Assembly: GCA_038496445.1 (NCBI GenBank)
Contig: JALMLS010000173.1
Location: 1 to 64,000, forward strand
Reading direction: 5' to 3'
DNA: 64,000 nucleotides
From: Trichosphaerium sp. ATCC 40318
Taxonomy: Eukaryota > Protista > Tubulinea
The translations under genes and the position numbers were made by a program. The stretch's first letter is position 1. The number at the start of each line of letters is the position of its first letter. The notes below the pieces were generated by a model, which was given only the letters and a program-made list of their open reading frames with translations, did not search any database and had not been told where the DNA came from. Shown here one piece after another: positions 13,504 to 59,346 of this stretch.

Positions 13504-15196
13504 ATGGAGAAGGAGGAAGCCGATGTATTACCTTTTGAATCGTTTCCGCGTGAAATACTTGTGTTAATCATCTATAACCTCGATGTGGAATATTTGGTAG
13601 CTCTTGGCGCTACTTCTAAGTCTTTTAGATCATTTACATCTGATAACTTTTTGTGGCAATGGTTTTACGCCCAACACTTCGTATCAGAACCTAAAGGTAC
13701 CGATTCAAGCGTTTAAATACAATTTACAAACAAACTTCAACAGGTGATAACATCAAGAGCGCTTTTATCTACGAATGGACACACAAGGTACTAATCTAAC
13801 TGAACCCATTGCAAACTGTCAAAAAAAGCCGGCTCTAAGAGCGTAGCAAAGTTTGTTCAAATTCTACTCGAAATGTGTTAACAGCCTTGTTGTAGATGGT
13901 CATGCTCCAAGTTTACAGGTGACCAACTTTTAATGTCTCGCTACTAGACCATTTTAACATCTTCCCAGTTCGTACAATAATGAAGTAGCAAAACATTTTC
14001 CAAAGTTGGAAATGTCAAAGACATCCGAAAGAAAAATAACAGCATCTGACAATGAAGTACGTGTTTACACCTTTAAAGTTAACTTGAACACTACCTAATA
14101 CAAACACGTTTTTTAAGATCAAGTGTTGTTTCTGTGGAGGTGGAGGCGTAGGATGTGTATGTTTCAAGAGTTTTTTTTTTTTTGTCACGTGATAAACCAC
14201 GTGTTTTGACAACCTCGATAATAGACCGCCATAATCACAAGATACATAACTGGTCGGTTCCTGGAGGAATATGATCCAATAATCGGTATGTGAGGGAAAC
14301 CCAAATATGTAGAACTTTGTCAAAAAAAAGTCGAAAATTCGGCACACTAATTATCCTATATTATGTCATAGGAACTATTTAGAAAGCCCCCCTTTCAAGA
14401 GAGGTTTGGGGGGGGCAGATCCTAGCTGTAGTGACATGACTTGTTGTACATCTGATACGGCACTCTAACACTGTATTTAGAAGATGAAACGATACTGTAC
14501 ATCAAAAAGGGAAATTTTTATGCTGAATTTAATGTACTCGATACCGCCGGCCAAGAAGAGTGCGTTTACATATCAGACTTCCAATTTTCGTGTTACATTT
14601 TTTGAAGTTAACTTTTTTATATCGGTTAGGTATAGTGCCATGCGTGATCAATACATGCGCAGCCGAGAGATATTTGTTCTTGTTTACTCTTGTAGAAGTA
14701 GATCAAGCTTTGATGAACTTAATAGTTTCAGTAAACAGATCATGCGCGTTCAGGATGTCGATGTATTCCCAATGATACTAGTACTGCTCTTTGCTGCGAT
14801 ATTCGTGATGGTTTTGGTCAGTTTAGTCACTTTTGTTAGGTTGCGAATAAGTGTGATCTAGTAGATGAAATACAAGTACCCGATTCTGAAGGTATAGAAT
14901 GTGCAAAGTCATGGGGAGCACGTTTCATCTCTGTGAGTTGTAAAACAGGAAAAAATATTTACAAACTTTTTGAACTTATTATTGAACACTATCAACATAT
15001 GGTGTTACAGCAACCTGTAAGGTATTGTCCATTTTTAAAGTTATAACGTTTCAAGTGTTTATCAATTCTCCTATTAATAACATTATTTAATGGTTCCTCA
15101 CAACACGTGCTACTCATGTCTAACCTTAAAAATAGTACTACAAAAAATAAATCCAAGATATCCAAATTTTTCTCTAAGATGCTTGGCAAGAAATGA
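13504..15196 (+). CDS. F-box + Ras-family GTPase fusion with degenerate P-loop
   Basis: F-box [35 protein letters not shown], followed by spliced exons [13 protein letters not shown]|[20 protein letters not shown]|[12 protein letters not shown]|[10 protein letters not shown]..|[17 protein letters not shown]. The last exon (polybasic ..[10 protein letters not shown]) is tentative. Confidence 0.8.
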
Positions 15197-15915
15197 TGTA
15201 ACTTGTATAAACTAAGCACTTGATTAATGGCACTCAATATAATTACACAACACCATGATTAATCACCGTTACACAAAATCTTTAACATACGAGGACAATT
15301 TCATTCTTAATGGAAGAACATTAGCTTGCCGAGGCAATAATTTGTGGCGACAAACAAAGCATAGGTCTTAACAATTAATAAAAAAGTAAGGTTAGTAGCG
15401 CATCACCAATATCATGTTTGAGCTTGAGTTCTAAGCGGAGAAAGGCGATTGCTTTGGCAACTCGAACACTATCCAAAGTTCTTCAACACGAATTAAAACA
15501 CGTGATTTTTAAATTGAAAAAAAAAGTGGTTTAGGTCCACCCAGACCAACCTTGTCAAACTGACTCTAAGTGCACATTATAAGCAAAATAGAGATGTTTT
15601 AATGTGGAGGTAAAGACTACTCATTAAAGGAAAAATCTTGGAATTTTGTTCATGAAACACGTGGTATGTAAACATACTTATGGATGATCCCTTTCTTTCC
15701 GAAAACTCTTATGTGCCCGTAGGCTGTAGCCGTAAATCAGTTTGCTACAGTGGTTTTAACAGCACCTTGTTGAGTAGTTGCCAACTATGTTATAAAGTTA
15801 GAGTTAGTCTAGTTCGATAAAAAAAACAGAAGAGTAAGTTGCTAAGGCATGAACTTTAAGCAAACCTATATATATACACCTACTCACTACGCTAAGCACA
15901 TATTAAAGAAAGAGT

Positions 15916-17333
15916 ATGTTACATAAATCTACGAATATACCTGAAGAGTACGTTTCCAATGAATATTGTTGTGATGTCTTTTTTCTAGTCCTTTCTCACT
16001 CAAACTTGTCTCTGATTACATACTCACAGGCCATTCGAATTACTTTGGCTACCTACAGAAATTATCTTTTGTATCCTGGCGTTTTTAGGCAAGAAATGCC
16101 GTATATCTGCTACATTCGCTTGTAAACTGTTTTCTACAATCATTTTGGAGCATTTAGGGTATTTAACAGTGAGTGTCAAGTCAACAGAAAATCTACACAA
16201 ACTGTACAGAAGTCCTCTTTTAACAAATACGACAGTAATTATTCACAACATTGTTATGACTGATGATGACTTTAAAAGTATTTCTGGTGTTCACCACCTA
16301 GAAATTAACAATTGGGGGATTTCATTAACAGATACTATGTTAGGACACATAGCAGGTGTACGTCATCTGAAAGTTGCGATGAAATTCTCTGGATCCAAGT
16401 TGACAAGTCTTGGGTTTAAGTCACTTCATGGTATTCATACACTACTCATGCCACAAATGTATTTAGAAGATGAATGGCTTCAAGAACTTAATAGTATCCA
16501 TACACTTGATATTTCAAACACAGATATAACAGACAAAGGACTTGCGGCACTGTATGGTTCACACTATTAATTTAAATTGTTGCAGCGAAATTAGCGACAA
16601 AGGTGTCATTGCCATTTCAGGTGGTGTACACAAAATACAGCTTAGTGAATGTAGTATTACAGATCAAAGTGTAAGATATCTAACAAACGCTACTGCATTG
16701 TCATTTTGTGACTGTAAGGGCATTACAGATGAAGGAGTAAAGTATTTGTTAACACAAAATCAAACAACAAAGAAAATCAACAAAATTAACCTTGAACGCT
16801 GTACTCAAATATCAAACAATGTGTTGAAACTTCTTGCTGGTATACCTTGTATAGAGATAGGTGGTTGTGATCAACTAACTGATGAAACTCTGGCATGTTT
16901 GGTAGGTGTAAATCATATTGATTTGAATGATTGTAACGCTTTAACAAATGATGGGATAAAACAATTGGCAGGTGTGAAAGTGATAAATATTTCTTGGCTT
17001 CATTGTGTTGATGATAGCACTTTACAGGCTCTTGCTGGAGTGCATACAATATTTATTGATGATACACATGTGACAGATGAAGGTTTAAGCTACTTAATTG
17101 GAGCTAAAGTCATAAGTCTTTACAAATGTAAGCACATAACTGACAAAGGAGTGAATAGTCTCATTGGTGTTAAGAAAATAGATCTTCATGGCTGCAAACA
17201 AATCACAGATAATGGAGTTGTTAATTTAACAAGCATTGATGAAATTGATTGCCTTAGTACTCAAATAACATGCCAAATGACTGATCAACTAGGATGCAAA
17301 ACAGACGTTGAAACTTTTTGGCCTGATTTTTGA
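15916..17333 (+). CDS. F-box/leucine-rich repeat protein with one frameshift (pseudogene or assembly error)
   Basis: Exon 1 MLHKSTNIPEE, an intron, then F-box LLWLPTEIIFCILAFL..ACKLF and many xxGVHTIxLxxCxxITDxG repeats. The frame breaks near 16557 (TATGGTTCACACT where the repeat consensus expects YGVHT). Confidence 0.78.
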
Positions 17334-17815
17334 TTGCTTAAGCATTTTCTCTACATAAATACATTAAACGTCGTTCTGTTTATTTTCAAATACTCAATTC
17401 AATGAATTTGGTTGTTGAATTAGCTTGCTACTCAGATGTTATGGACAAATGTGATAGAACAAACATGAGTGTACTTACGTACACGACGGCAAGGCAATGT
17501 GTGCCACTCATGAACGAGTAGGTTCTGTAAACTGACGGACCCATTCCGCACATCAAAAAATCTAACTATCAAGGTAGAAATGAAATTGTTCTCGCCCGCT
17601 TAAACAAGAAGTAAACAGGAACGTTATCGTGGTACCATAACGGAGGTTAACAAATAATATTACCATAGCTTATCGATAAAGAATGCAGTAACAAAATAAG
17701 TTATAGCATAATAGCTATCCGATCCGTACGTCTTATTCAGAAAAATGCCAACTTTTTCTAATTCAGATAATCCAAGAACGTCATCGTATTATTTGGTTTC
17801 TATTGCTGTAAAACA

Positions 17816-19573
<1,758 letters not shown>

Positions 19574-19854: not shown

Positions 19855-20205
19855 ACCAGCGATTAGTACAGCTTTTTATATGGTGTGCCTGTAGTATTAG
19901 GTAGGAGAGCACTGTATCGCTCAGAACCTAGGATATTTTTTTAGATTGTCTAAAATTAATACAGTACAGGCACTGTTTGTGTCCCTGTGGAATAGCATTA
20001 GTGTCATGTAACAAAAAAGGGACTTACCAGATGTCCTGGTGTAGTTGTTTTCCTTTGTCTGTTACAAGAGTTTCCCTTAAACAAGGTTAGTGTGAATATT
20101 AATGTATTATAAAACCGTACCCACAGCTGAACACCCAAGAAATACTGCTTTGTATCTTGTAGGCTTTTCCGCCAGTGGCTTTTCTACAATGTAGTATGAG
20201 CTCAT
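19855..20205 (-). pseudogene. Rab5-like GTPase pseudogene (copy D), internally deleted and 3'-truncated
   Basis: MSSYYIVEKPLAEKPTRYKAVFLGCSAVG, then a jump from the GKT micro-exon into exon 4. SERYSALLP is retained; later exons are absent. Confidence 0.8.
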
Positions 20206-20904: not shown

Positions 20905-21510
20905 TGAGCCTTGATAAATTTACAAGTCCTTTATGTTTTTGCAGGCTTTTTGGAGGTTTGCTGCTCAAAATCTTTGCCATGTGTACAAGTAAACTAAGTT
21001 GTTTCAGAAAATCAAGTTGTAAAAAAAGTAATTAAAATTTCAAGGTACCCCTCTCCTGTTGAAGCTGATACTTCTATGAACGCGCTAACCTTTGGGTTGT
21101 TAAACTTGGTTTGACCATCCTCTGAAGTGATTGTTCTATGATCTACTCTATCAATCTTATTTGCACATACAATGGTGTGACAATTGTAGTATATAGGTAG
21201 GAGAGCACTGTATCGCTCAGAACCTAGGATATTTTGTTAGATTTAGTAATTTGAGAGTTTGCTATAGACATATGATTGGCGTACATTCATCAAATGTGTT
21301 TCTTGTTATGCGTATGCCAAGCTACAAATGAGTTGAGATGTTTGAACAAGTGACTTGATTTTATGTACGCTAGTTTTCCTTAAAACAAGGTTAGTGAATA
21401 TAAATGTATTATAAAACCGTACCTACAGCTGAACACCCAAGAAATACTGCTTTGTATCTTGTAGGCTTTTCCGCCTGTGGCTTTTCTACAATGTAGCAGT
21501 ATGAGCTCAT
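20905..21510 (-). pseudogene. Rab5-like GTPase pseudogene (copy E), mirror of copy C with internal deletions
   Basis: Exons 1-3 are present (GCSAVG, GKTS, LGIRITRNTFDE) and exons 4-5 are deleted. SERYSALLPIYY is fused directly to NCHTIVCANKID; the terminal exon MAKILSSKPPK is present. Confidence 0.8.
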
Positions 21511-21850
21511 TGTATTTCCTGGAGTTGTTATTGAATTTACACGACCTTTTTATGGTTAGATTTTGCCTCAAGTTAGAGACATACCCACATTTGATTACTA
21601 AACTGACAGGATCTTGTCAGTTTTGTTAGTTCTGTTAATCACAGGGAAAAAAGGAACCACACCTCTACATAGCATACGTGCGAGTTGTATTGCTATTCTC
21701 AATGGATTTATGTTCAACTATACAGTCGAAGAGAATGGTACTAAGGGGCTTTCATACCAGTCCTTGTCAAGAGCTGAACGGACTAGTCAACATTTGTGAA
21801 ACAATTTTACAAAAAAAAAACACCATAAACTATGCCAAAAAGGTTTTTAT

Positions 21851-24800
21851 CTAGTTTCCAGGATTTAAAAAAGACACCAATTCTTGTACAATACTGTGTA
21901 CAGTTACTAGAAGATACTTATCAGCACTTTCAAGAGAGTCATACAAACTATCGTAGACAAGATTGATGTCTGATAGCATGTACTGGTACTTTGCTTGTGT
22001 TATGACATAAATTATAGCAGGCCATACTTTATCAGCTCCACCACATAAACGGTAATAGTCGTACAGTTTTGGCTCTTTGTCTTTTGTTTTTTGGGAAAAA
22101 ATTGAGAATGTGCTTCTTTTTTTCTTTTCCGTATTAGGTTGAGAAGCTGCTTTTTTTTTTTTTTCGGTAATACTTATGCAAATGCCGATACGTCGACTCA
22201 TCTCTCTTAAGTGACAAAATTTTTGGTAAGGAGATTTCGCTTCTGATATTCGTTTTATTGCATCAACAGCATCTTTCCACTGTGTAGAACCTTGGAGCGC
22301 CTATTTCGTAAAATATTAAGTACAAAAGAATATTTTGGAACACGTGCTTCTGGCAAGGGGTCGTTTGTGTGTTCAAGCATAGCCTTGGTCAACTCCTTAT
22401 CTGCTTTTTCGTACTAAATAAATAGAAAATTAGGCTTGAAGGTACATGGTGGAAAGTATCTTAAGTACATGTCTTTTGTATGTGCCATACACTAGAGAAG
22501 AGATATCTTGTTCCTCAAATAGTTTGGCATGTACCCAAGCCATAATCGTATTTTTAACCTCATATGGGAGCTTAAATTTTGGTGTAAAATTGCGAACTAT
22601 CGTAGCGAGTACTTCCTTCAATGCACTTGCAAGTTTTTCGACATCTGACGTGCTGTGCTTTTGACCAAACGTAATACCAAATTGTTTAATAGAATTCTCA
22701 TGTTGTCTACTCTACAATTTAGACTTATAAGGGTACCACAACGTACTCTAGTTGTTCATATAACGCAGTAGTACTAAATACCGGACTATTCTTGTAAACC
22801 TTGAATATATCAGAAATAATCACGTTTCTAAAGTCACGTACTTGATGGTTTTCTGGTTTTATTTTATCTACCATCCACCCAGTTATGCCACCTTTGCATA
22901 TAGGACACTTATCTTGTAGCTTATAAGCACAATAGGTACATAAATGGTTGCAACGATGAATTGTGTCTTTACACACAAAACATATTGGTGTCTTAACAAA
23001 TCATGTGAGTGTTAAAGCGTGAATTTTGTTACATACCGTGCTTTCTGTTGGGTCAACTTTCTCTCTTATTTCTGCAGTATTAAAGTTATATTGAGTACAT
23101 GCCCCCTCTATTTTTACTCTATGTCTTGTCAAGAACTCTCTCTTCCATACATATTCACATAGCGCAGTTTCAGTTAAGTCCAAAGACAATCGTTGCGCCT
23201 GCATTATTAGGTTAGATTACAATAGTTAAAAAAAAAAAACAGTTAAGTATTCTTACGTTAACAACACTCTCAATGTCTAAGACGCAAACATTAAGGCAAT
23301 TACATATGTACGCAATATTCCCTTCAAGGTTGCCCAGAGCCTTATTAGTCAAATCAGTGAACTCTGACTTGTTTGTGATATCTTTTAAGTTCTTTATCAG
23401 CATTTCAAATAGTCTCTGTTTGGTTTCTACATCGTGTTAGTCTAAACAAACGTAAAAGCACTACAAAGCATACCTTGTTCATCCTTTCCAGACGGCATTT
23501 TAGAAGTCCATATGTTTGGAAGAGCAATTGCTCCCGCTCCAACAGCCAGAACAGCCACACCGCCAGTAGTCACTGTAAGTACAGATAGCATCGTGGCAGC
23601 TGCAGGGTTCAATAAGTAGTATTCAACAACATTTTTGTACCAACTATTGCTACACTTGCCGCACCAGCAACGCCAAGTGAAGCTGTAGCAACATTTGAAC
23701 TTGTAGGTGCTTGGAAAAATGAGAGTAAGAAATTAAACGGACGAATGGTATATACCTAATCGTTGAGCATTCCACTATCAATTTATAAGTACACTTTGGT
23801 AAAAAATAGTAATAAATAACACGAACCTGAGTACTCAATTCAAGAGTTTGGGATGAGCTAAAGAAAACCATGACAACAAATTTAAATAAAAGGTGCGAAA
23901 GCAAGGCAAAACCCACTGAAGGTACTTTTTCTTCCTTTTTTTTTTTTTTTTTTTTTCATTCGCTGCACATATGATTTGAACGTACCAAACTGAACTACTT
24001 TTATTCTTAAAAACTTCTTTGGTGATTGTTTGTAAGCTTTCTACTTGACTTTGTATCCACCTTTTGAATTAAATTAATTGTTAAATACACGTGATCAAAT
24101 AATACAAAACACTCACACATCTAGTTTTTTTCGCTCCTCATGGACAAAGGTAATCAGAGTATCATGTGAATATCTATCAAAATATATCTTTAATTGTTCA
24201 TAAACCTTCGACTCGTAATCAGTGAAGTGCCTATTTCTTTGGAACCAGCTTGAACTTGGTAATTCAAAAGGAACTGTTGGTGTCATTTCCTAAAGACAAA
24301 AACCAATATAAGCGCGTCATAAGAGAACAGTTTTTGATGAAAAAAAAACGATACACATACCTCTAATTTAGTAGAACCACACAGTACGTTTTTAAATTTG
24401 TCTACTACTTTTGAGAAACGCGCCTTGAAATTTTTCTTAACTTCTTCTACTTTTAGTCTTGCTTCCGTTTCAAATCTTCGAATCTCAATATGTATTTTTT
24501 TAACTTTTCGTTCAACATCTTTGTAATCAATCTTGGACAGAGTAGTGTTTGGCTTATCAATCGATTTTGTAACGTGTGCCAATATTATCTTGGACAAGAA
24601 TAAATGCTGCACACTAAATAGAGGATCAACAGTCACAAATGTATTCTATCCATGTTTCTGTACCGAATCAATTGACGCATATTACTCAACATTGTTGATA
24701 CTGTTGTGTTTGACACTGCTTGCAAACTTTCACCGAGAGCTCTTTTGAACTCAGTGAAACCCGGACTCTTTTCGCCATAACTACATTGCTTTATGTTGAA

Positions 24801-26098
24801 CTATGTGTACTACCATTAAATATACTAACAATTACATTCCACGCACTTTAAATATTTTAGGGTCCTCAATCTGTAACTCGTCCCGTAATATCTTCTCTGC
24901 CTTCCGAATATCTTCTTCTGAGTCTGTACTGTAAATATTGAGAACAAACAAAACATTTTTGCCCATGGAATGCTGATGAGCAATAAATTTTAGTTCACGT
25001 TCTCCCTAAATTGTAGAGTCAGTTCTGTAAATCTCTTTGTGCTCGTACAGTAACGTCTCCACACAGTAACACGTGGATAATCAAAGGTGCTGAATAAACA
25101 TAATGTTGTGCTTGTAATCTTGAGCGTTCAGTGCTATTTCCAGGGGTATCGATGATGCATATACCAGGCTTGTCTATGCCAAAAATAGGGCTACATTTGG
25201 TCAAAAAAAAAAGTTCCAGATTTTTTTATGTACCGTTGAAATTGGACTTCCTTTACTAGCGGATATTTATGTAGCACCTTCGGTATATCAAATAGTACAC
25301 GCAGTGTTTCACCTGGTTATTATTAGCTGTGTAGTTACAGATAATAGTATACTAACCAAGCTTATCTGCGGAAATTTCTGGATTTTTTTGCAAAGTCGCC
25401 AATACCGATTTAAGTTCCAGGTGCTTGCCTTGTACATCAGGACGATCCCACGTTTGTTTTATATCAGCGTTGGGCTCTAAAGCAACGTGTGCTGCTCTAA
25501 ATTGGTTAAGGATAAAAAAAGTTACGAAGTACAAAAAATTACCTGGCTGTGTCCCGCATTCCTGAAGAAATAATACAAGGACAAGATGTGCACCGTGTTT
25601 TTGCAGTTGGTAGTATATCTGCGCCAAGAAATATATTGCCGAGGGTGCTTTTTCCTGCATTACGACCATAGAGTACCACAGTGGCCTTATCACTTTCAAG
25701 CTTTGGTTCGTTCAATCAGATTTGCTATCAAAAAGTGTACCGTACCCTTTCCAAGTGCTCCCTAGACATTTCATGTACAACAGCAAACGGGGAAGTCCCA
25801 GAAAACAGATTTTTGGAAACGACAGACACCTCCTTCATTTCTGAGAACGATTTTAATGCCATCTACAAATTTAAGTAAGGTGGGGTGGCATATGGGCCGT
25901 TTCACGTACTTGAAATTCTTTGTCTTCATAAAACTCTTTTACTTTTTCTTTTAGCGATATGGTGAGGCCAAGCTGTTCACTGAGCGAATTGATATCAATT
26001 TCTGGCTCCAGCTCTGAGTGTATGTGAGTAATTCAATCATTGGCATTAGAAAAAGCGCTGATACCAGTATTAGTATTTAGTTCCACACTCTTTTCCAT
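21851..26098 (-). CDS. Dynamin-like GTPase - TM hairpin - RING - VPS9 fusion protein, copy 1
   Basis: Spliced: MEKSVELNTNT|ELEPEID..; VVLYGRNAGKSTLGNIFLGADILPTAKTRCT (dynamin-type G1/G2); IIDTPG (G3); hydrophobic GVAGAASVAIV..MLSVLTVTTGGVAVLAVGAGAIALP; RING-like CFVC..CNHLCTYC..CPIC; VPS9 SPYQKFCHL..GGADKVWPAIIYVITQA..KYLLVTV. Confidence 0.85.
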
Positions 26099-26337
26099 GG
26101 ACAAAAAGAACTAAAGATTTGTGTTGGTTATCCGTTTATTTGTTTTGTGGTTTGTTCCCTTCCTACTTTTACACTTTGTGCTTTTCAATGAAAGGAACCG
26201 CTAGCGCTACTTTTTTGCTCACTATATGTTATGTTGCTTTGTGGAAAAAAAGAACCGCCAATTTCTTTCATGTGAACGCACAAGGCTCAACATGTGAGTG
26301 AATAGTTCTTGTAAATTCAATAAACAAAAAAACAAAC
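26099..26337. promoter_or_regulatory. Putative bidirectional promoter of pair 1 (dynamin-VPS9 / Rab A)
   Basis: 239 bp between divergent ATGs; the sequence is conserved with 30076-30311. Confidence 0.6.
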
Positions 26338-27473
26338 ATGACGTGCTGTTCTCCTGTAACCACTAAGCCACCGACAACAGAGCGAACTCTTGTATACAAA
26401 GTTGTAGTTCTTGGGGCCATATATGTGGGTACGGTTTATAACACATTAATATTTACACTAACCTTGTTTTAAGGGAAAACTAGCGTACATAAAATCAAGT
26501 CACTTGTTCAAAACATCTCAACTCATTTGTAGCTTGCCGGGCGCATAACAACAAACACATTTTATGATGGTACGCCAATCACATGTAGCAAAGGCTCAAA
26601 TTACCAGACCAGAAACCCACAATTGCAGCCGCATACTTGACGAAAAATCTTGACACAGACGACGGAAAACAGATAACTCTAGAAATATGGTACGCAAGTC
26701 TATTTTGTTTCATTACACTAATCTTATTCCACCAGGGACACAAGTGGTTTGGAAATGTACGACTTGGATTCAATCTAACGAAATATCCTAGGTGACGAGC
26801 GATACAATTCTATCATACCTATGTACTACAGGTGCGCCATATAAATCGCGATATCTGGTGTTATAAATTAAAGTTACAGTTCGACTGGCTTTTTTTCCCC
26901 AACGTCACAGAATGAGATTATGTATTTATTTCGCTTATAAAATGAGCGTTTTCAACGTGTGGGGAAAAAAAGCGGAGAATTTGAACGAAATCCTTTTTCA
27001 AATACAACTAATTTGTTCCTCTTGTTAACCAATATGCTAGAAACGCAGACCTTGCCCTTATTGTATATGATGTAACCAATTCAGAGTCACTTGAAGTAAG
27101 AGAATTTATTTTCACAAGGAAAAGTGTAACAAGTTTAGAAAGCTGATTATTGGATGAAGACGCTTCAAAAAAAAGTGCTCGATTGTGACACCATTGTATG
27201 TGCAAATAAGATTGATGAAGTAGATCATAGAATCACTTTAGAGGATGGTCAAAGTAAGTTTAACAACCCAAAGGTTGCTGCGTTCATAGAGGTATCAGCA
27301 AAAACAGGAGAGGGTGTTGATGGGTACCTTGAAATTTTAATTACTTTTTTTTACAACTTGATTTTCTGAAACAACTTAGTTTACTTAAACACATGGCAAA
27401 GATTTTGAGCACAAAAACCCCACAAAATTCTCATCAACGTAATGGATTGCGAGTTTTAGAGAGCACAGAATAA
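26338..27473 (+). CDS. Atypical Rab5-like small GTPase, copy A (9 exons, intact)
   Basis: Spliced: [106 protein letters not shown]. All introns are GT-AG. Confidence 0.88.
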
Positions 27474-27479
27474 ATAGAG

Positions 27480-27945
27480 TCGCCAAGGCTCACTTTTTTT
27501 GAGCACCATTTCACCTGTTTCGGTTATATTTATTTGTTATCATCATTCAAGTTTGCAAAACTATGCAACTTTTTGCTGTTTGTGACTTTTGGTTTCTGTG
27601 TTTAGTCATCAGACAGATCTTGCACCTTCTGTTAGTTCTTACAGGATCTTGAAAAAACAAAATCCACGTGGACATGTACAAGGCATACAAATATTTTTGC
27701 GACACCACGTGTTCTTAACCACCATTATTTTATTTTGTACATTAGCTTATGTAGTTCTAAAACGGGTACAAATTGATAATGCTTTTTTACACGTTAACTT
27801 ACTAGCACAACAGCACATTCAGGCGTATATATTTCACGTGAGATAACGTAAAAACCACAAAGAAAATTAAATTGATTACAAGCGCTTCCAAAGTATCTTG
27901 AGCTGAGTGTACGGTATTTCCATAGCGTAATAATCCGTTTTAGAG
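27480..27945 (+). repeat. Dispersed non-coding repeat; other copies at about 20440-20905 (-), 28000-28255 (-), 28452-28920 (-) and a diverged one at 40490-40700 (+)
   Basis: Shared core TTTTTGCTGTTTGTGA..TTTAGTCA..AGATCTTGCA..GTTAGTTCTT..CCACGTG. A 20-bp sub-repeat AGATCTTG(C/T)AAGAACTAACA is tandem at 28121-28160 and about 20729-20770. Confidence 0.75.
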
Positions 27946-28972
27946 TATAGGTGACAACTGTTGGATTAGAGGTCATCAGAGGCACCAACAGAACTCAACG
28001 CTAATGTACCAAATAAATATAATTTGTTGAAACACGTGTAGCAATAATATGTACGCGTTGTACACTGGATTGTATTTCCTCCGGAACTGACAAGATCCGT
28101 CAGATCTTGTAGTTTTTGACAGATCTTGCAAGAACTAACAAGATCTTGTAAGAACTAACAGAAGTTGCAAGATCTGTCAGATCTGACTAAACACGAAACC
28201 AAAAGTCACAAACAGCAAAAAGTTGCAAAGATTAGCAAACTTGAATGATACGGACAATACCCACATTTGATTACCATTGCAACATCCTCTTTGGCTACAA
28301 GGTTTGTAAACCTAAATATATTGAGTGGTATGACATGGATGAAGCTGCTTGAAACAGTACATGAAGACAAATATAACTGACAGAATCTTGTAAGTTTGGT
28401 AATCAGGGAAAAAAGGAACCGCACCTCTAATGTACAACGATTGTCTCCTACTAAAACGGATTATTACGCTATGGAAATACCGTACACTCAGCTCAAGATA
28501 CTTTGGAAGCGCTTGTAATCAATTTAATTTTCTTTGTGGTTTTTACGTTATCTCACGTGAAATATATACGCCTGAATGTGCTGTTGTGCTAGTAAGTTAA
28601 CGTGTAAAAAAGCATTATCAATTTGTACCCGTTTTAGAACTACATAAGTTAATGTACCAAATAAAATAATGGTGGCTAAGAACACGTGGTGTCGTAATAA
28701 TATTTGTATGCCTTGTATATGTCCACGTGGATTTTGTTTTTTCAGAGATCCTGTAAGAACTAACAGAAGGTGCAAGATCTGTCAGATGACTAAACACGAA
28801 ACCAAAATCACAAACAGCAAAAAGTTGCAAACTTGAACAATATGGACAATGTGGTAACAAATAAATATAACCGAAACAGTTGAAGTGCTCAAAAAAGTGA
28901 GCCTTGGCGACTCTATTTATTATGAACAATTTACCTTTAACATTCTGAATTGATACAATCACTTTGTGCTCT

Positions 28973-30075
28973 TTATAAATTTACCAGTCCTCCCTGTTTA
29001 TGAGAGCTTTGTGGGGGTTTGGCACTCAAAATCTTTGCCATGTGTGCAAGTAAGCTAAGTTGTTTCAGAACATCAGGGTGTAACAAAAAAAGTAATTAAA
29101 AATCTGTTTCAAAGTACCCATCAACACCCTCTCCTGTTGAAGCTGATACCTCTGTGAACGCGGTAACCTGTAGATCTTCAAACTTGCATTGAACTTCCTC
29201 TGAAGTGACTGTTCGATCTACTCTATCAATCTTATTTGCACATACAATGGTGTAACAATCGGGCACATTTTTTTGAAGCTCCCTCATCCAATAATCAGCT
29301 CTCTAAACTTGTTACACTTTTCCTAGTGAAAACCACCCTGGTGACAATAAATAAATTCTCTTACTTCGAGTGACTCTGAATTGGTTACATCATATACAAT
29401 AAGGGCAAGGTCTGCGTTTCTAGCATATTGGTTAACAAGAGGAACCAATTAGTTATATTTGAAAAAGGATTTCCTTCAAATTCTCTGCTTTTTTTCACCA
29501 CGTTGGGAAAAAAAGTCAGAGTTGAACATAGTCGAACTGCAACTTTAATTACACCAGCGGTTTATATGGCGCACCTGTAGTATATAGGCATAAGAGCCTT
29601 GTATCGCTCGTGACCTAGGATATTTCGTTAGATTGTATCCAAATTGTACATTTCCAAACCACTTGTGTCCCTAGTGGAATAACATTAGTGTAATGAACAC
29701 AATAAACTTACTTACCATATTTCTAGACCTATCTGTGTTCCTTCGTCTGTGACAAGGTCTTTCGTCATGTATACGCCTCCAATTGTGGGTTCCTTGTCTG
29801 GTAATTTGAGTTTGATATAGACATATGATTGGCGTACCATCATCAAATGTGTTGTTTATTATGCGTGTGCCAAGCTACAAATGAGTTGAGATGTTTGAAC
29901 AAGTGACTTGATTTTATGTACGCTAGTTTTCCCTTAAAACAAGGTTAGTGTAAATATTAATGTATTATAAAACCGTACCCACAAATATGGCCCCAAGAAA
30001 TACAACTTTGTATCTTGTAAGAGTTTCCTCGTTTGTTGGTGGGTTTTCTACAGTGTAACAGCAAGAGGTGCTCAT
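28973..30075 (-). CDS. Atypical Rab5-like small GTPase, copy B (intact)
   Basis: Spliced: [109 protein letters not shown]. Confidence 0.88.
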
Positions 30076-30311
30076 GTTATTTTTTTTTTTTGTTTATTGA
30101 ATTTACAAGAACTATTCACTCACATGTTGAGCCTTGTGCGTTCACATGAAAGAAATTGGCGGTTCTTTAGTTCCACAAAGCATAACATAAAGTGAGCAAA
30201 AAAAATACGGTTCCTTTCATTGAAAAACAAAGTGTAAAAGTAGGAAGGAACCAACTACAAAACAGAAAATAAACGGACAAACCAACACAAACACGACTAG
30301 TTCTTTTGTCC
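30076..30311. promoter_or_regulatory. Putative bidirectional promoter of pair 2 (Rab B / dynamin-VPS9)
   Basis: 236 bp between divergent ATGs; mirror of 26099-26337. Confidence 0.6.
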
Positions 30312-33300
30312 ATGGAAAAGAGTGTGGAACTAAATACTAATGGTACCAGTGGTTATTCTTATGCCAACAATTGAATTACTCACATACACTCAAGAGTTGG
30401 AGCTAGAAATTGATATCAATTTGCTCAGTGAACAGCTTGGCCTCACCATATTGCTGAAAGAAAAAGTAAAAGAGTTTTATGAAGACAAAGAATTTCAAGT
30501 GCGTGAAACGGCCCATATGCCACCCCACCTTACTTAAATTTGTAGACGGCATTAAAATCGTTCTCAGAAATGAAGGAGGTGTCTGTCGTTTCCAAAAATC
30601 TGTTTTCTGGGACTTCCCCGTTTGCTGTTGTACATGAAATGTCTAGGGAGCACTTGAAAAGGGTAAGGTACACTTTTTGATATTAAATCTGATTAAACGA
30701 ACCACAGCTCGAAAGTGATAAGGCCACTGTGGTACTCTATGGTGGTAATGCAGGAAAAAGCACCCTTGGCAATATATTTCTTGGCGCAGATATACTACCA
30801 ACAGCAAAAACACGGTGCACATCTTGTTCTTGTATTATTTCTTCAGGAATGCGGGACACAGCCAGGTAATTTTTTGTACTTCGTAACTTTTTTTTCCTTA
30901 AACCAATTTAGAGCAGCACGCGTTGCTTTAGAGCCCAACGCTGATATAAAACAAACGTGGGATCGTCCTGATGTACAAGGCAAGCACCTGGAACTTAAAT
31001 CGGTATTGGCGACTTTGCAAAAAAATCCAGAAATTTCCGCAGATAAGCTTGGTTAGTATACTATTATCTGTAACTACACAGCTAATAATAACCAAGGTGA
31101 AACACTACGTGTACTATTTGATATACCGAAGGCGCTGCATAAATATCCGCTAGTAAAGGAAGTCCAATTTCAACAGTACTTAAAAAAATCTGGAACTTTT
31201 TTTTTGACCAAATGTAGCCCTATTTTTGGCATAGACAAGCCTGGTATATGCATCATCGATACCCCTGGAAATAGCACTGAACGCTCAAGATTACAAGCAA
31301 AACATTATGTTTATTCAGCATCTTTGATTATCCACGTGTTACTGTGTGGAGATGTTACTGTACGAGCACAAAGAGATTTACAGAACTGACTCTACAATTT
31401 AGGGAGAACGTGAACTAAAATTTATTGCTCATCAACATTCCATGGGCAAAAATGTTTTGTTTGTTCTCAATATTTACAGTACAGACTCAGAAGAAGATAT
31501 TCGGAAGGCAGAGAAGATATTACGGGACGAGTTACAGATTGAGGACCCTAAAATATTTAAAGTGCGTGGAATTTAATTGTTTGTAATATTTAATGGTAGC
31601 ACACATAGTTCAACATAAAGCAATGTAGTAAAGGTGAAAAGAGTCCAGATTTCACTAAGTTCAAAAGAGCTCTCAGTGAAAGTTTGCAAGCAGTGTCAAA
31701 CACAACAGTATCAACAATGTTGAGTAATATGCGTCAATTGATTCGGTATGGAAACATGGATAGAATACATTTGTGCCTGTTGATCCTCTATTTAGTGTGC
31801 AGCATTTATTCTTGTCCAAGATAATATTGGCACATGTTACGAAATCGATTGATAAGCCAAACACTACTCTGTCCAAGATTGATTACAAAGATGTTGAACG
31901 AAAAGTTAAAAAAATACATATTGAGATTCGAAGATTTGAAACGGAAGCAAGACTAAAAGTAGAAGAAGTTAAGAAAAATTTCAAGGCGCGTTTCTCAACA
32001 GTAGTAGACAAATTTAAAAACGTACTGTGTGGTTCTACTATATTAGAGGTATGTGTATCGTTTTTTTTTTCATCAACAACTGTTCTCTTATGACGTGCTT
32101 ATTGGTTTTTGTCTTTAGGAAATGACACCAACAGTTCCTTTTGAATTACCAACAAGTTCACGCTGGTTCCAAAGCAATAGGCACTTCACTGACTACGAGT
32201 CGAAGGTTTATGAACAATTAAAGATAAATTTTGATAGATATTCACATGATACTCTGATTACCTTTGTCCATGAAGAGCGAAAAAAACTAGATGTGTGAGT
32301 GTTTTGTATTATTTGATCACGTGTATTTAACAATTAATTTAATTCAAAAGGTGGATACAAAGTCAAGTAGAAAGCTTACAAACAATCACCAGAGAAGTTT
32401 TTAAGAATAAAAGTAGTTCAGTTTGGTACGTTCAAATCATATGTACAACGAATGAAAAAAAAAAAAAAAAGGAAGAGAGTACCTTCAGTGGGTTTTGCCT
32501 TGCTTTCACACATTTTATTTAAATTTGTGGTCATGGTTTTCTTTAGCTCATCTCAAACTCTTGAATTGAGTACTCAGGTTCGTTATTTATTACTATTTTT
32601 TACCAAAGTGTACTTATAAATTGATAGTGGAATGCTCAACGATTAGGTATATACCATTCGTCCGTTTAATTTCTTAGTCTCATATTTTTCCAAGCACCTA
32701 CAAGTTCAAATGTTGCTACAGCTTCATTTGGCGTTGCTGGTGCTGCAAGTGTAGCAATAGTTGGTACAACAATATTATTGAATACTACTTATTGATCCCT
32801 GCAGCTGCCACGATGCTATCTGTACTTACAGTGACTACTGGTGGTATGGCCGTTCTGGCTGTTGGAGCGGGAGCAATTGCTCTTCCAAACATATGGCCTT
32901 CTACAATGCCGTCTGGAAACGATGAACAAGGTATGGTTTGTAGTGCTTTTATGTTTGTTTAGACTAACACGATGCTAACACGATGTAGAAACCAAACAGA
33001 GACTATTTGAAATGCTGATAAAGAACTTAAAAGATATCACAAACAAGGCAGAGTTCACTAATTTGACTAATAAGGCTCTGGGCAACCTTGAAGGGAATAT
33101 TGCGTACATATGTAATTGCCTTAATGTTTGCGTCTTAGACATTGAGAGTGTTGTTAACGTAAGAATACTTAACTGGTTTTTTTTTTTTATCTATTGTAAT
33201 CTAACCTAATAATGCAGGCGCAACGATTGTCTTTGGACTTAACTGAAACTGCACTATGTGAATATGTATGGAAGAGAGAGTTCTTGACAAAACATAGAGT

Positions 33301-34571
33301 AAAAATAGAGGGGGCATGTACTCAATATAACTTTAATACTGCAGAAATAAGAGAGAAAGTTGACCCAGCAACAGAAAGCATGGTATTTAAAAAAATTCAC
33401 GCTTTAACACTCACATGATTTGTTAAGACACCAATATGTTTTGTGTGTAAAGACCCAATTCATCGTTGCAACCATTTATGTACCTATTGTGCTTATAAGC
33501 TAAAAGAGAAGTGTCCTATATGCGAAGGTGGCATAACTGGGTGGATGGTAGATAAAATAAAACCAGAAAACCATCAAGTACGTTACTTTAGAAATGTGAT
33601 TATTTCTGATATATTCAACAAGGTTTACAAGAATAGTACGGTATATAGTACTACTGCGTTATATGAACAACTAGAGTACGTCATGGTACCCTTATAAGTC
33701 TAAATTGTAGAGTAGACAACATGAGAATTCTATTAAACAATTTGGTATTTTGTTTGGTCAAAAGCACACCACGTCAGATGTCAAAGAACTTGCTTGTGCA
33801 TTGAAAGATGTACTCGCTAAGATAGTTGGCAACTTTACACCAAAATTTAAGCTCCCATATGAGGTTAAAAATACGATTATGGCTTGGGTACATGCCAAAC
33901 TATTTGAGGAACAAGATATCTCTTCTCTAGTGTATGGCACATACAAAAGACATGTACTTAAGATACTTTCCACCATGTACCTTCAAGCCTAATTTTCTAT
34001 TTATTTAGTACGAAAAGGAAGATAAGGAGTTGACCAAGGCTATGCTTGAACACACAAACGACCCCTTGCCAGAAGCACGTGTTCCAAAATATTCTTTTGT
34101 ACTTAATATTTTACGAAATAGGTGCTCCAAGGTTCTACACAGTGGAAAGATGCTGTTGATGCAATAAAACGAATGTCAGAAGCGAAATCTCCTTACCAAA
34201 AATTTTGTCACTTAAGAGAGATGAGTCGACGTATCGGCATTTGCATAAGTATTACCGAAAAAAAAAAAAAAGCAGCTTCTCAACCTATTACGGAAAAGAA
34301 AAAAAGAAGCACATTCTCAATTTTTTCCCAAAAAACAAAAGACAAAGAGCCAAAACCGTATGACTATTACTTTTTATGTGGTGGAGCTGATGAAGTATGG
34401 CCTGCTTTAACTTATGTCATAACACAAGCAAAGTACCAGTACATGCTATCAGACATCAATCTTGTCTACGATAGTTTGTATGACTCTCTTGAAAGTGCTG
34501 ATGAGTATCTTCTACTAACTGTACACAATATCGTAAAAAAATTGGTGTCTATTTTAAATCATGGAAACTAG
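30312..34571 (+). CDS. Dynamin-like GTPase - TM hairpin - RING - VPS9 fusion protein, copy 2
   Basis: Same exon structure as copy 1: VVLYGGNAGKSTLGNIFLGADILPT, IIDTPG, TM segments at about 32700-32900, CFVCKDPIHRCNHLCTYC..CPIC and VPS9 GGADEVWPALTYVITQA..EYLLLTV. Confidence 0.85.
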
Positions 34572-35147
34572 ATAAAAACCTTTTTGGCATAGTTTATGGT
34601 GTTTTTTTTTGTAAAATTGTTTCACAAAAGTTGACTAGTCTGTTCAGCTCTTGACAAGGACTGGTATGAAAGCCCCTTAGTACCATTCTCTTCGACTGTA
34701 TAGTTCAACATAAATCCATTGAGAATAGCAATACAACTCGGCTATGTTCTCCAGATCCAGTGAAAAGAAGAAGAACAGAAATAATTAAGCTATGTAGAGG
34801 TGTGGTTCCTTTTTTCCCTGTGATTAACAGAACTAACAAAACTTACAAGATCCTGTCAGTGTAGTTAGTTCTTTGCAGCACTTTGATACTTGAACAATAT
34901 GAACAATAGCTATCTTAGCTTGTAAATAACCACCTAGTAAGAATAAGTTTAGAAACGTTATATTTGTCTTCATGTACAGTTTCAAGCGGCTCCATCCATG
35001 TCATACCACTCAATATATTAAGGTTTACAAACCTTGTAGCCAAGAGGATATTGCAATGGTAATCAAATGTGGGTATATCTTTAAACTTGAGGCAAAATCT
35101 AACCAGAAAAAGGTCTTGTAAATTCAATAACAACTCCAGGAAATACA

Positions 35148-36196
35148 ATGAGCTCATGCTGCTACATTGTAGAAAAGCCACTGGCAGAAAAGCCTGCAAG
35201 ATACAAAGCAGTATTTCTTGGGTGTTCAGCTGTGGGTACGGTTTATAATACATTAATATTTACACTAACCTTGTTTTAAGGGAAAACTAGCGTACATAAA
35301 ATCAAGTCACTTGTTCAAACATCTCAACTCATTTTTAGCTTGGCATACGCATAACAAGAAACACATTTGATGAATGTACGCCAATCATATGTCTATAGCA
35401 AACTCTCAAACTACTAGACCAAAAACCCACAATTAGAGCTGCATTCATTACGAAAACTCTTGTAACAGACGAAGGAAAACAAATACACCTGGACATTTGG
35501 TAAGTACCCTATATTGTTTCATACCACTAATGTTATTCCACAGGGACACAGACGGTGCCTGAACTGCGTTAATTTTAGACAATCTAACAAAATATCCTAG
35601 GTTCTGAGCGATACAGTGCTCTCCTACCTATATACTACAGGCACACCAATAAAAAGTTGTACTAATCGCTGGTGTTGTAAACTAAAATATCACGTGTTTA
35701 AACCCTTACTTTGGTGGAATTTTGACTTGTTCCTCTCTTGTGTTAACCAAATACCCTTAGAGGCGCAGACCTTGCCATAATTGTATACGATGTATCCAAC
35801 AAAGAGTCATTCAAAGTAAGAGAATTTATTTGTTTACACAGATAGAAGCGTAACATGACTAGAGAGCTGATTGTTGGGTGGAAGAGATTCATGAAAGAGT
35901 GCACAATTGTCACACCATTGTATGTGCAAATAAGATTGATAGAGTAGATCATAGAACAATCACTTTAGAGGATGGTCAAAGCAAGTTTAACAACCCAAAG
36001 GTTAGCGCGTTCATAGAAGTATCAGCTTCAACAGGAGAGGGTGTTGATGGGTACCTTGAAATTTTAATTACTTTTTTTACAACTTGATTTTCTGAAACAA
36101 CTTAGTTTACTTGTACACATGGCAAAGATTTTGAGCAGCAAACCTCCAAAAAGCCTGCAAAAACATAAAGGACTTGTAAATTTATCAATTGTATAG
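35148..36196 (+). CDS. Atypical Rab5-like small GTPase, copy C (intact only if a weak GC donor at 35641 is used)
   Basis: [105 protein letters not shown]. Confidence 0.72.
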
Positions 36197-36965: not shown

Positions 36966-37760
36966 TCAGGTGTCCCGATAGATTTTATGAACACCAACAA
37001 GGGATTGTAACCCTTTATCTGTAATGTACCTGCAAAATGAAAGAGATATGGTATGGACGCCAGCAAGTGCTTTTAATCCTTCATCTGTAACTGATGTAGC
37101 ATCTAGAAAGATTGTATGAACGCTGGCAAGTGCTTCTAACCCTTTATCTGAAATTGATGTGCAAGATAGATAGATTGTGTGAACACCAGACAGTGCTTTC
37201 AATCCTTCATCTGTAACTGAGGTATCATTAAGAGAAATCATATGTACACCAGAAAGTGCTTTCAACCCTTCATCTGTAACCGAGGTATCATTAAGAGAAA
37301 TGACATATACACCAGAAAGTGCTTTCAACCCTTCATCTGTAACCGAGGTATCAGTAAGAGAAATGGTATGTACGCCAGCAAGTGCTTTTACCCCTTCATC
37401 AATTAAAGGATGCGCACATTGACTAAGGTTAATGGAACGAACACCAGCAAACGTCTTTATAACATCATTAGACGTTGCTTTGCCAGTAAGTGTGATGTGT
37501 GTGTTGGAGAGTACTTGAGTGTTTTAAAATAGCTTTTGCTTGGTCAACACTTGAAATACAGACGCGACAGTATCCTATAATATCGTGAATGATAGATGCA
37601 AGGCGATGACAAGTTTGAGAAGCGGCAAAGCGTGAGTTTGTTGTTTTACGTAAAATATGAGCTAAAATCTCTGTGGGAAGGTCTAATATGCTTGTCGTAG
37701 GTTAGAACAGTTTAACAACTAATTTTGTTCTTACTTCTCGGTTATGCTCTTTTCTGACAT
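36966..37760 (-). pseudogene. F-box/LRR gene with 66-bp (22-aa) tandem LRRs, frameshifted
   Basis: F-box ILDLPTEILAHIL..SQTCHRL, a frame break near 37525, then near-identical repeats ALSGVHxISLNDTSVTDEGLK. No clear splice acceptor at the expected position after exon 1. Confidence 0.7.
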
Positions 37761-57894: not shown

Positions 57895-58902
57895 TCATAC
57901 CCAGGCTATTTTATAAAGGTCAATATGTAAAGGAAGTCCCTTTGTTTCAGTTCTTGCAATCATATAATTAACTTGTGCTGTTTCAGAACCATAGCTAGCT
58001 TCGTAAGCAGGAGTTGGTTCCAGAGCACCATCAAGGGTTTCAAAGTTCCCTATTAATTTCCATTTCAACCCAAACTCATCCAAATCAGCTATAAAATGAG
58101 GAAGACGTATTTTGGAATCACCATGTGAACTACAAACAACGTGAAGATTGTTTTCTGGTCCTTTCAAAAACTCACAATTTTCGTATCCAACTGGAAACTC
58201 TGAACCTTCAGGGAATATTGGGTTATTATCGTATTCCTTATAAGGAGGTAGTAAAGAGTCTGTGACGTTACTGTTCGGAAAATAAGCTCCTTCTTGAGCG
58301 TCTTTGAAACCTGAAACGCCTTTTGTAAAGTAAATTCTTTTTCCTTTAATTTTCATAATTCTACCACTATCAAGTCTTCTCGCATTCCAAGTCTGATTCC
58401 AAGACGGTGCTTTTCCTGTTGGATAAGCAACAAGACCATGACGAGTCCAAGGTCCGTGCATTGTTGGTGATGATGCTACAAGTTGTGCTGACTCTTCAGT
58501 TGATGAATAGTTCTTTCCAGTTCCCGTATAAAAAACCCAAAACTTTCCGTTATCGTAGATGAGAGATGACGAAAACGTTCCAGCATAGTCAAACGCGTTT
58601 TCGTCTGAAGTGCGGTTAAATAATAACCCATGATCAGTCCATTCTCCTGTAATGTTTTTTGCGGAGTAGTAATGTAAGAAAGCGTGCCAGCCAGCTTGTG
58701 TTCCTTGAGATAACGGGATATAGTCCGACACAAACCAATACGTTCCATCTACGAGAATAACGCTGCTTGGATCGCGTAGATGCCCTGTTTTGTCCGCAGC
58801 TATCGTTTTAACTCTTGTAAGTGATGGCGTAAGAAAGCATAGATAGCAAGGTATTAACACGAAGAGAAGAACACTTGTTATAGGTAAGAAATGGTGCATC
58901 AT
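57895..58902 (-). CDS. Secreted five-bladed beta-propeller glycoside hydrolase (GH117/GH32/GH43-like), intronless
   Basis: Single ORF with signal peptide; RDPSSVILVDGTY, WTDHG..AFD..GKFWVFYTG, ASSPTMHGPWTR, RLDSG and YENCE. Confidence 0.78.
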   Translation of the reverse strand: MMHHFLPITSVLLFVLIPCYLCFLTPSLTRVKTIAADKTGHLRDPSSVILVDGTYWFVSDYIPLSQGTQAGWHAFLHYYSAKNITGEWTDHGLLFNRTSDENAFDYAGTFSSSLIYDNGKFWVFYTGTGKNYSSTEESAQLVASSPTMHGPWTRHGLVAYPTGKAPSWNQTWNARRLDSGRIMKIKGKRIYFTKGVSGFKDAQEGAYFPNSNVTDSLLPPYKEYDNNPIFPEGSEFPVGYENCEFLKGPENNLHVVCSSHGDSKIRLPHFIADLDEFGLKWKLIGNFETLDGALEPTPAYEASYGSETAQVNYMIARTETKGLPLHIDLYKIAWV

Positions 58903-59346
58903 ACCGAACGTCGAAAAATACAATGACTATTCATTAAGGGCTATTGCCGTCCTTAAGTATGTCGCCATATATTGTGTATGTGTATGTGTTAAACATGATA
59001 GCCTTGTTATGTGAAATTTAGATACTGACGAAGGAAGGATAAAGTAAATGAAAGTTCATATGAAAAGTTAAAAAAAACCACAAGTACTGTCGCAATATCA
59101 CGTGATTTTCAAGGTTGAATCAAATCCAATTACTATTCAATTCTATTACCTTTATTTAACGTCGTGTCATATTCCGTAGCTAAGGTTATAAGACGAGTTG
59201 TTACAGGTACGAGGTAAGGAGAATTCTAGTTTTATTAAATTTATAACATTACAAGGAGTTATATTCACATAACAAATGAGGAACCGACAGTTGTATGTAC
59301 ATTGTAAAAAATGCTCTACCAACAATGTTCTTATAATATATCTCCA

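Follow-up and report, generated by a model that had tools for sequence, protein, structure and literature searches.

VPS9 domains and the Rab5-group GTPases, which are their known class of substrate, make up an ancient pairing of activator and switch. The activator is normally a soluble protein that is recruited to membranes, and to our knowledge the genes for VPS9 activators and for Rab5-group GTPases are not normally linked. In plants, the Rab5-group member ARA6/RABF1 is N-myristoylated and palmitoylated, has no C-terminal cysteine, and shares its activator, VPS9a, with the canonical RAB5s (PMC5947987). A pan-eukaryotic survey of VPS9 proteins includes Mayorella and Dictyostelium entries labelled 'P-loop NTPase, Vps9', on which it does not comment further (Herman et al. 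2018, Table S1; PMC6032885). Here we describe a locus in a 64,000-nucleotide stretch from the amoebozoan Trichosphaerium sp. ATCC 40318 (contig JALMLS010000173.1, positions 1 to 64,000 of the forward strand; 'the window' below), at which a gene for a predicted membrane-anchored, dynamin-like GTPase ending in a VPS9 domain is flanked on both sides by Rab genes. We consider whether the large protein and its neighbours may be a GEF (guanine nucleotide exchange factor) and its substrates.

A three-gene cluster in a palindrome

The window is AT-rich (about 36% GC), and its genes have many very short GT-AG introns (38-125 nt) and exons as small as 11 nt; the gene models were curated by hand, using GT-AG borders, from three-frame displays. 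Repeat finding and blastn revealed an inverted duplication, a palindrome of ~16 kb (about 20.2-36.2 kb), with three genes in each arm in the order Rab, large gene, Rab. Its best-kept part, 21681-26886 against 34740-29530 (about 5.2 kb), is 94% identical with gaps counted and 96-97% identical in ungapped blocks. These data show that the cluster of a dynamin-like-VPS9 gene between two Rab genes is lineage-specific and that an inverted segmental duplication copied it, at a neutral distance of about 4% from the present.

In both arms, the large gene lies head-to-head with the inner Rab gene. In arm 1, Large1 (26070..21851, minus strand) faces RabB1 (26338-27473, plus strand) across an intergenic region of 267 bp (26071..26337); in arm 2, Large2 (30340..34571, plus strand) faces RabB2 (30075-28973, minus strand) across 264 bp (30076..30339). 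The two regions, which set the start-to-start spacing of each pair, are 94% identical. The outer Rab genes lie downstream of the large genes and on the same strands: RabA2 at 35148..36196 (plus strand) follows Large2, and RabA1, a pseudogene at about 20912..21640 (minus strand), follows Large1. A fifth Rab remnant, of which only fragments of the 5' half are left, lies at 19899..20193 (minus strand). With five Rab genes or remnants of them in 16 kb, a birth-and-death pattern is clear. At the centre of the palindrome (27474..28972), the 3' flanks of the inner Rab genes form inverted repeats (27466-27943 against 28924-28451) around a spacer of ~500 bp, and the open reading frames (ORFs) there had no Pfam match.

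An earlier note on this DNA, made from the letters alone, had placed two divergent units of a large gene and a Rab here, and the gene models and Pfam matches bear out both. Its ATG-to-ATG spacing of ~240 bp was close to the 264 and 267 bp measured. It had further described the two-gene unit itself as duplicated; the copies are indeed inverted, but they belong to a single ~16-kb palindrome with three genes per arm, and one of the arms is breaking down. Arm 1 is decaying, as seen from the loss of RabA1 exons and the frame breaks of Large1.

The large protein and its homologues

Large2 is intact: 19 exons and 18 GT-AG introns encode 1064 residues without a stop, the least certain part of the model being exons 11 and 12 (32547-32569 and 32695-32763). 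The order of the encoded regions is an N-terminal GTPase, probably of the dynamin superfamily and resembling bacterial dynamin-like proteins and mitofusins, with its P-loop near residue 105 and DTPG at 246; a helical region; a hydrophobic hairpin at about residues 558-612; a cysteine-rich zinc finger, whose cysteine cluster starts at residue 734; and a C-terminal VPS9 domain with its aspartate finger at D1005.

The last exon (34143..34571, plus strand) encodes the catalytic core and matched the Pfam VPS9 model with an E value of 2.7e-8 and 34.6 bits, above the cutoff of 27; the homologue P0002, introduced below, scored 48.3 bits. A profile of the region matched Rabex-5 (E 3.6e-8) and Arabidopsis VPS9a (E 2e-6). 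A family-invariant 'GAD' motif, with D1005 encoded at 34389-34391, aligns to the 'ADD' aspartate finger of Rabex-5 (D313). Just before this motif, the core carries a lysine-rich insert of ~45 residues (about 34230-34375) that is absent from both outside homologues; it may be a loop or, to judge from the GTATTA...AG borders at about 34249-34346, an unspliced in-frame intron.

At the other end of the protein, the G1 (GNAGKST) and G3 (DTPG) motifs are present and the P-loop exon of Large2 matched Dynamin_N with an E value of 7.7e-6 and 26.5 bits against a cutoff of 27 (26.1 bits for P0002). The hairpin is encoded by two exons (32695..32930, plus strand) as ~45 hydrophobic residues, with Kyte-Doolittle 19-residue means of 1.4-2.0 over residues 558-591. 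Residues 558-612 have a central TTGG turn and are long enough for two membrane helices, and the segment aligns with the hairpin of P0002. With two helices crossing the membrane, the GTPase end and the VPS9 end should both be cytosolic. What looked like a frameshift in the hairpin region was only apparent and is a 41-nt intron common to both large genes.

The zinc-finger exon (33428..33675, plus strand) has the pattern C-x2-C-x6-C-x-H-x-C-x2-C-x7-C-x2-C. The Pfam model zf-C3HC4_3 matched only the window copies, with an E value of 7.6e-4 and 19.5-20.8 bits against a cutoff of 27, and there were competing weak matches to the double zinc ribbon. The seven cysteines are invariant in P0002, in which the histidine is an arginine, and the zinc fingers of P0002 and of the second homologue (contig L002) matched no RING model in Pfam. 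In a canonical RING, the first loop and the His-Cys spacing are longer than the six residues and one residue found here. An AlphaFold2 model of the exon from three sequences reached a pLDDT of only 37 and was not used. Because the score is sub-threshold, the histidine is not conserved, and neither homologue matches a RING, we do not assign the zinc finger as a RING E3 ligase; a C3HC4 cross-brace is not apparent from its sequence. The dynamin-transmembrane-RING-VPS9 architecture proposed in the earlier note stands for the hairpin and for the VPS9 domain, falls just under the cutoff for Dynamin_N, and is doubtful for the RING.

When 1.8 billion representative proteins were searched with the VPS9 exon, P0001 and P0002 were the only two found. 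P0002, from a Logan assembly, has 923 residues and the same domain order as Large2. The two are colinear for about 840 residues, with a phmmer E value of 3e-34 at the scale of the database. P0001 lies on a 1.26-kb JGI contig (L002), on which an upstream frame encodes the zinc finger of the family. Within positions 1-525 of this contig, a stop codon falls in the same frame between the post-hairpin linker and the zinc finger; an intron that was retained, an error in sequencing or a broken gene could explain it. Further homologue searches added nothing to these two proteins, and metagenome and viral scans gave no matches. Counting the window, P0002, and P0001 with its contig, the large-protein family is rare and occurs in at least three organisms or samples, the two outside sequences being environmental or of amoeba type. 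The P0002 sequence had no significant PDB match; its nearest ESM Atlas clusters, at a score of 0.81, consist of bacterial proteins of the dynamin family, which is no more than a lead.

All 19 exons of Large2 can be projected onto Large1 with GT-AG borders kept and two frame problems. In exon 5, an additional T within a T-run near 25212 leads to an immediate stop; it could be an assembly error in a homopolymer. Exon 1 has lost 1 nt near 26016 and has no start codon where Large2 has its own. Exon 2 opens with the first ATG in frame, its first codon having changed from Thr to Met, and this could serve as a later start codon. Large1 may be a pseudogene. The introns of the two large genes are 3.9% apart, and the proportions of synonymous and non-synonymous differences (pS and pN) are 0.042 and 0.028. 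When the domain borders follow the motifs' actual positions, residues 54-557 (the GTPase and helical part) have a pN/pS of 0.42, below 1 (p 0.011), and are under purifying selection. The half after the hairpin has a pN/pS of 1.18, no different from 1 (p 0.42), and the two halves differ at p 0.043. This contrast is a weak signal, for which a dying Large1 could account. In the VPS9 core, 15 of the changes between the copies are non-synonymous and 2 are synonymous; among the former are E1006K and E1043K, which adjoin the catalytic motifs; over the last exon, the two VPS9 variants differ at 14 sites.

The Rab genes

Three of the Rab copies have open reading frames. RabB1 and RabB2 are intact, each with 9 exons, and encode 201 residues (starting MTCC, with switch II DTSGD) and 199 residues (MSTSCC, DTSGH), respectively; RabA2 is an open ORF of 200 residues (MSSCC, DTDGS). 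They are 62-66% identical among themselves, with GKT, DTxG, NKID and SAK/SAS invariant. The switch II glutamine is replaced by Asp, His or Ser, and no Rab copy has a cysteine in its last 40 residues. Intron 6 of RabA2, whose donor is at 35641, begins with GC rather than GT (GGCACA, against GGTGCG in RabB1); it may be one of the rare GC-AG introns, or else its splicing is defective. RabA1 has no DNA matching RabA2 35417-35580 and 35640-35902, that is, exons 4, 5, 7 and part of 8, including the switch I and switch II exons. The fifth remnant was recognized by tblastn with RabA2 residues 6-30 (96% identity), 56-73 and 77-86, and by blastn to 35121-35285.

The Pfam Ras model matched Rab exon 8 with an E value of 8e-6 and 25.9 bits, above the cutoff of 21.6. 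Against the PDB, all 20 matches of a switch I exon profile were to Rab22A, Ypt51, Rab31 or Rab5, at E values of 0.035 or weaker; a profile of exon 8 ranked Rab6B first, followed by Ypt51, RABF2b and Rab5; and a single Rab exon sequence had no significant match. Switch II and the sequence that follows it are also Rab5-like. From these single-exon profiles with weak E values, the flanking Rabs are tentatively placed in the Rab5/22 group. Two of the G motifs are each encoded by an isolated 11-nt micro-exon, at 26474-26484 (GKTS of the P-loop) and 26736-26746 (DTSG of switch II) in RabB1 and likewise in RabB2 and RabA2.

Four Rab copies have a conserved 17-nt element, TCTTGTAAATTCAATAA, placed 14-18 nt upstream of their start codons: at 21528-21544 (RabA1), 26307-26323 (RabB1), 30094-30110 (RabB2) and 35114-35130 (RabA2). 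The two inner sites lie within the divergent intergenic regions, each at the Rab-proximal end. The element occurs nowhere else in the 64-kb window, where 0 copies are expected by chance, and is a candidate core promoter or 5' untranslated region element of the Rab family.

The inner Rab genes have diverged far more than the large genes with which they are paired: the exons of RabB1 and RabB2 are 17.8% apart, against about 3% for the large-gene exons (Fisher p 3.5e-35), with a dN/dS of 1.05. The reading frames remain open despite this divergence, which is the outcome in 1.3% of simulations with 106 random substitutions. Site patterns are mosaic, with exon 8 of RabB1 nearer to the RabA copies than to RabB2, and these patterns point to gene conversion among the Rab paralogues on top of rapid protein change. 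Introns 1, 2 and 8 are 97-100% identical among the paralogues; introns 3-7 are 10-14% apart between RabB1 and RabB2. We rejected the idea that the Rab exons evolve while the introns are frozen, since introns 3-7 have also diverged.

Separately, a block of about 104 nt consisting of introns 1 and 2 and the 11-nt micro-exon between them (26429-26532; 29933-29978 and neighbouring positions; 35236-35338) is 97-100% identical among RabB1, RabB2, RabA2 and RabA1, while the exons on either side of it, 1 and 3, differ by 20-40%. The conservation of this block and of intron 8 reflects either constraint on the splicing signals of micro-exons or short-tract gene conversion.

Some features of the surrounding DNA are recorded here. 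Left of the palindrome, 14484-19570 (plus strand) holds a Ras-family ORF (14484-14858), LRR_6 repeats (16145-17330) and a ZZ zinc finger (18962-19570). To the right lies a mirrored LRR_6 ORF (36969-37328, minus strand), and 13916-14197 is 77-86% identical to 36704-36456. These flanking segments may reflect an older and wider mirrored duplication or a ROCO-like gene family. Further away, an uninterrupted ORF of 342 residues (57898-58923, minus strand) has weak matches to glycoside hydrolase families 43/32; because it is intron-free within an intron-rich genome, it may have been acquired as a bacterial-type gene. For the cluster itself, an origin in a giant virus or a transposon was dropped, given the dense spliceosomal introns of its genes and a viral scan without matches.

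A possible activator-substrate pairing, its alternatives and described systems

We put the probability that the large protein and its neighbouring Rabs are a GEF-substrate pair at roughly one in two. What makes the pairing plausible is that the VPS9 aspartate finger is present and that the Rabs keep the switch II aspartate and the P-loop lysine. Exchange by Rabex on Rab5 needs D313 of Rabex and the switch II aspartate of the Rab, and not the switch II glutamine; mutation of this glutamine in Rab5 leaves activation by Rabex unchanged and mainly slows basal hydrolysis (PMC3919270). The loss of the glutamine is thus no argument against activation by a VPS9 domain. The head-to-head spacing kept in both arms was also counted in favour of a module.

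If the pairing holds, the large protein would be anchored by its hairpin in the membrane of an endosome or phagosome, where the VPS9 domain would load GTP onto the neighbouring Rabs. The Rabs would be held at the same membrane through S-acylation of the N-terminal Cys-Cys and, having lost the glutamine, would hydrolyse GTP slowly on their own and so stay active for longer. The dynamin-like GTPase part could then tether or remodel the membrane that carries them. The inner Rab and the large gene would probably share the 264-bp region as a bidirectional promoter, and the evolution of the Rab copies would combine birth-and-death with gene conversion and fast change of the proteins.

Several observations weigh against this pairing. 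The adjacency is one independent event only, since the Rab copies share a single local ancestor and the two arms are one duplication. Each Rab copy has its own upstream 17-nt element, among them RabA1 and RabA2, neither of which faces a large gene, and the Rab duplication unit therefore carries its own candidate proximal control sequence. The contig of P0002 (L001) encodes Rft1, ALG11, a protein kinase and two unknown ORFs beside the large gene, and no Ras-family or Rab gene within the 7.7 kb upstream and 1.7 kb downstream; in this single comparison, linkage of a large gene to a Rab did not recur at an independent locus or in another species. Within the window, Large1 looks broken while its partner RabB1 is intact. 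As to the GTPase itself, Dynamin_N falls 0.5 to 0.9 bits short of the Pfam cutoff in Large2 and P0002, and the G4 motif deviates (N-I-Y-S in Large2, N-V-H-D in P0002). Of what the earlier note had proposed, a co-regulated functional unit keeps a plausible pairing of GEF and substrate, but on a single adjacency and with a candidate control element for each Rab of its own; in the test of linkage that it had suggested, the one comparison, L001, showed no adjacent Rab.

Alternatively, the neighbourhood would be incidental, with a duplicating local Rab family that happens to flank a VPS9 gene, a VPS9 domain that serves canonical Rab5, and a palindrome that simply copied its contents. The five Rab copies or remnants produced by birth-and-death, the separate 17-nt elements and the solitary gene on L001 all fit such an account. 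However, the neighbours probably fall in the very group on which VPS9 domains act, they retain the residues for VPS9 exchange, and the 264-bp head-to-head spacing has been kept in both arms. Of the alternatives this survives best, and we still consider it unlikely.

In a conflict module, the Rab would instead be a decoy, an antidote or one half of a polymorphic recognition pair and the large protein the executor, both of them co-evolving rapidly. The divergence of RabB1 from RabB2 relative to the large genes, with a dN/dS of 1.05 and open reading frames, is what such a system might produce, as are the 15 to 2 excess of non-synonymous changes in the VPS9 core (E1006K and E1043K included), the opposite-charge changes in switch II of the partner Rabs (D/N in RabB1, H/K in RabB2), and the palindromic amplification with LRR genes on both flanks. 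However, the charge pattern is anecdotal, coming from two pairs only; the pN/pS of the C-terminal half is not different from 1 and Large1 may be a pseudogene; the mosaic sites point to gene conversion among the Rabs; and the outside homologue is solitary. Pfam found no immune sensor or executor domain (NB-ARC/NACHT, LRR, death or signalling) in the large-gene and Rab exons, the LRR_6 genes lying outside the unit; no toxin domain was found, and the RING is sub-threshold and not conserved. The guarded decoy, antidote or allorecognition partner suggested in the earlier note accordingly gained no specific support, and beyond fast evolution and amplification there is no direct support for immune, antidote or recognition readings, which we hold to be improbable.

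That the whole cluster is a decaying duplicate region without current function is more doubtful still. In its favour are two pseudogenes (RabA1 and the remnant at 19.9-20.2 kb), the frame breaks of Large1 and the GC donor of RabA2 intron 6. Against it, the 1064 codons of Large2 stay open across 19 exons and 18 GT-AG introns, no G motif or splice site has been lost from RabB1 or RabB2, Rab frames are unlikely to have stayed stop-free by chance (1.3% of simulations), and the GTPase and helical part is under purifying selection.

Returning to the GEF-substrate pair, a more specific form of it would have the large proteins and the Rabs as private, rapidly co-diversifying activator-switch pairs, in which each VPS9 variant prefers its own Rab and the large protein, as a membrane-anchored, dynamin-like fusogen, is limited to membranes that carry the matching Rab. 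Such pairs might be used in self/non-self discrimination at cell or phagosome fusion, or to escape pathogen effectors that target Rab5. We give this extension little credence. In either form, three intact Rab variants and two VPS9 variants would offer a compact system in which to follow how specificity between GEF and Rab evolves.

Among described systems, the likeness to the head-to-head sensor/executor pairs of NLR genes is confined to the divergent orientation and the short common intergenic region, and unlike NLR pairs the window genes have no NB-ARC, NACHT, LRR or integrated decoy. Mitofusin, the bacterial dynamin-like proteins BDLP and DynA, and atlastin resemble the large protein as large GTPases with a P-loop, DTPG, a helical region and a membrane hairpin or paddle, but none of those families has a zinc finger and VPS9 tail. 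Full-text literature searches found no paper joining a VPS9 domain to dynamin-like, mitofusin or atlastin terms, and nothing on the window locus. The 'P-loop NTPase, Vps9' proteins of Mayorella and Dictyostelium (PMC6032885) are likewise amoebozoan VPS9 proteins with an added NTPase domain; they differ, by description only, in having no dynamin-like label, hairpin, zinc finger or Rab linkage.

The Rabs of the window are comparable to ARA6/RABF1 as probable members of the Rab5 group with a predicted N-terminal anchor in place of C-terminal prenylation. Unlike ARA6, they lack Gly2 and could carry no more than S-acylation of the Cys-Cys pair; the switch II glutamine has also been lost, and they are of independent origin, in Amoebozoa. 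If the locus works in this way, they would follow plant ARA6 as a second, independent case in which a Rab5-group GTPase gave up C-terminal prenylation for an anchor at its N terminus.

Also comparable are Rabex-5, Vps9p and plant VPS9a, which act on Rab5-group GTPases and with which the large protein shares a C-terminal VPS9 core and its aspartate finger; the neighbouring GTPases appear to be nearest to Rab22, Ypt51 and Rab5. There are three differences: the predicted GEF domain forms the end of a dynamin-like GTPase with a predicted membrane anchor; the gene is physically paired with Rab genes; and the VPS9 core carries the ~45-residue lysine-rich insert. If the pairing is true, a eukaryotic GEF and its likely substrates have been kept adjacent and amplified together, and a Rab5-type activator has been built into a membrane-anchored, dynamin-like remodelling GTPase.

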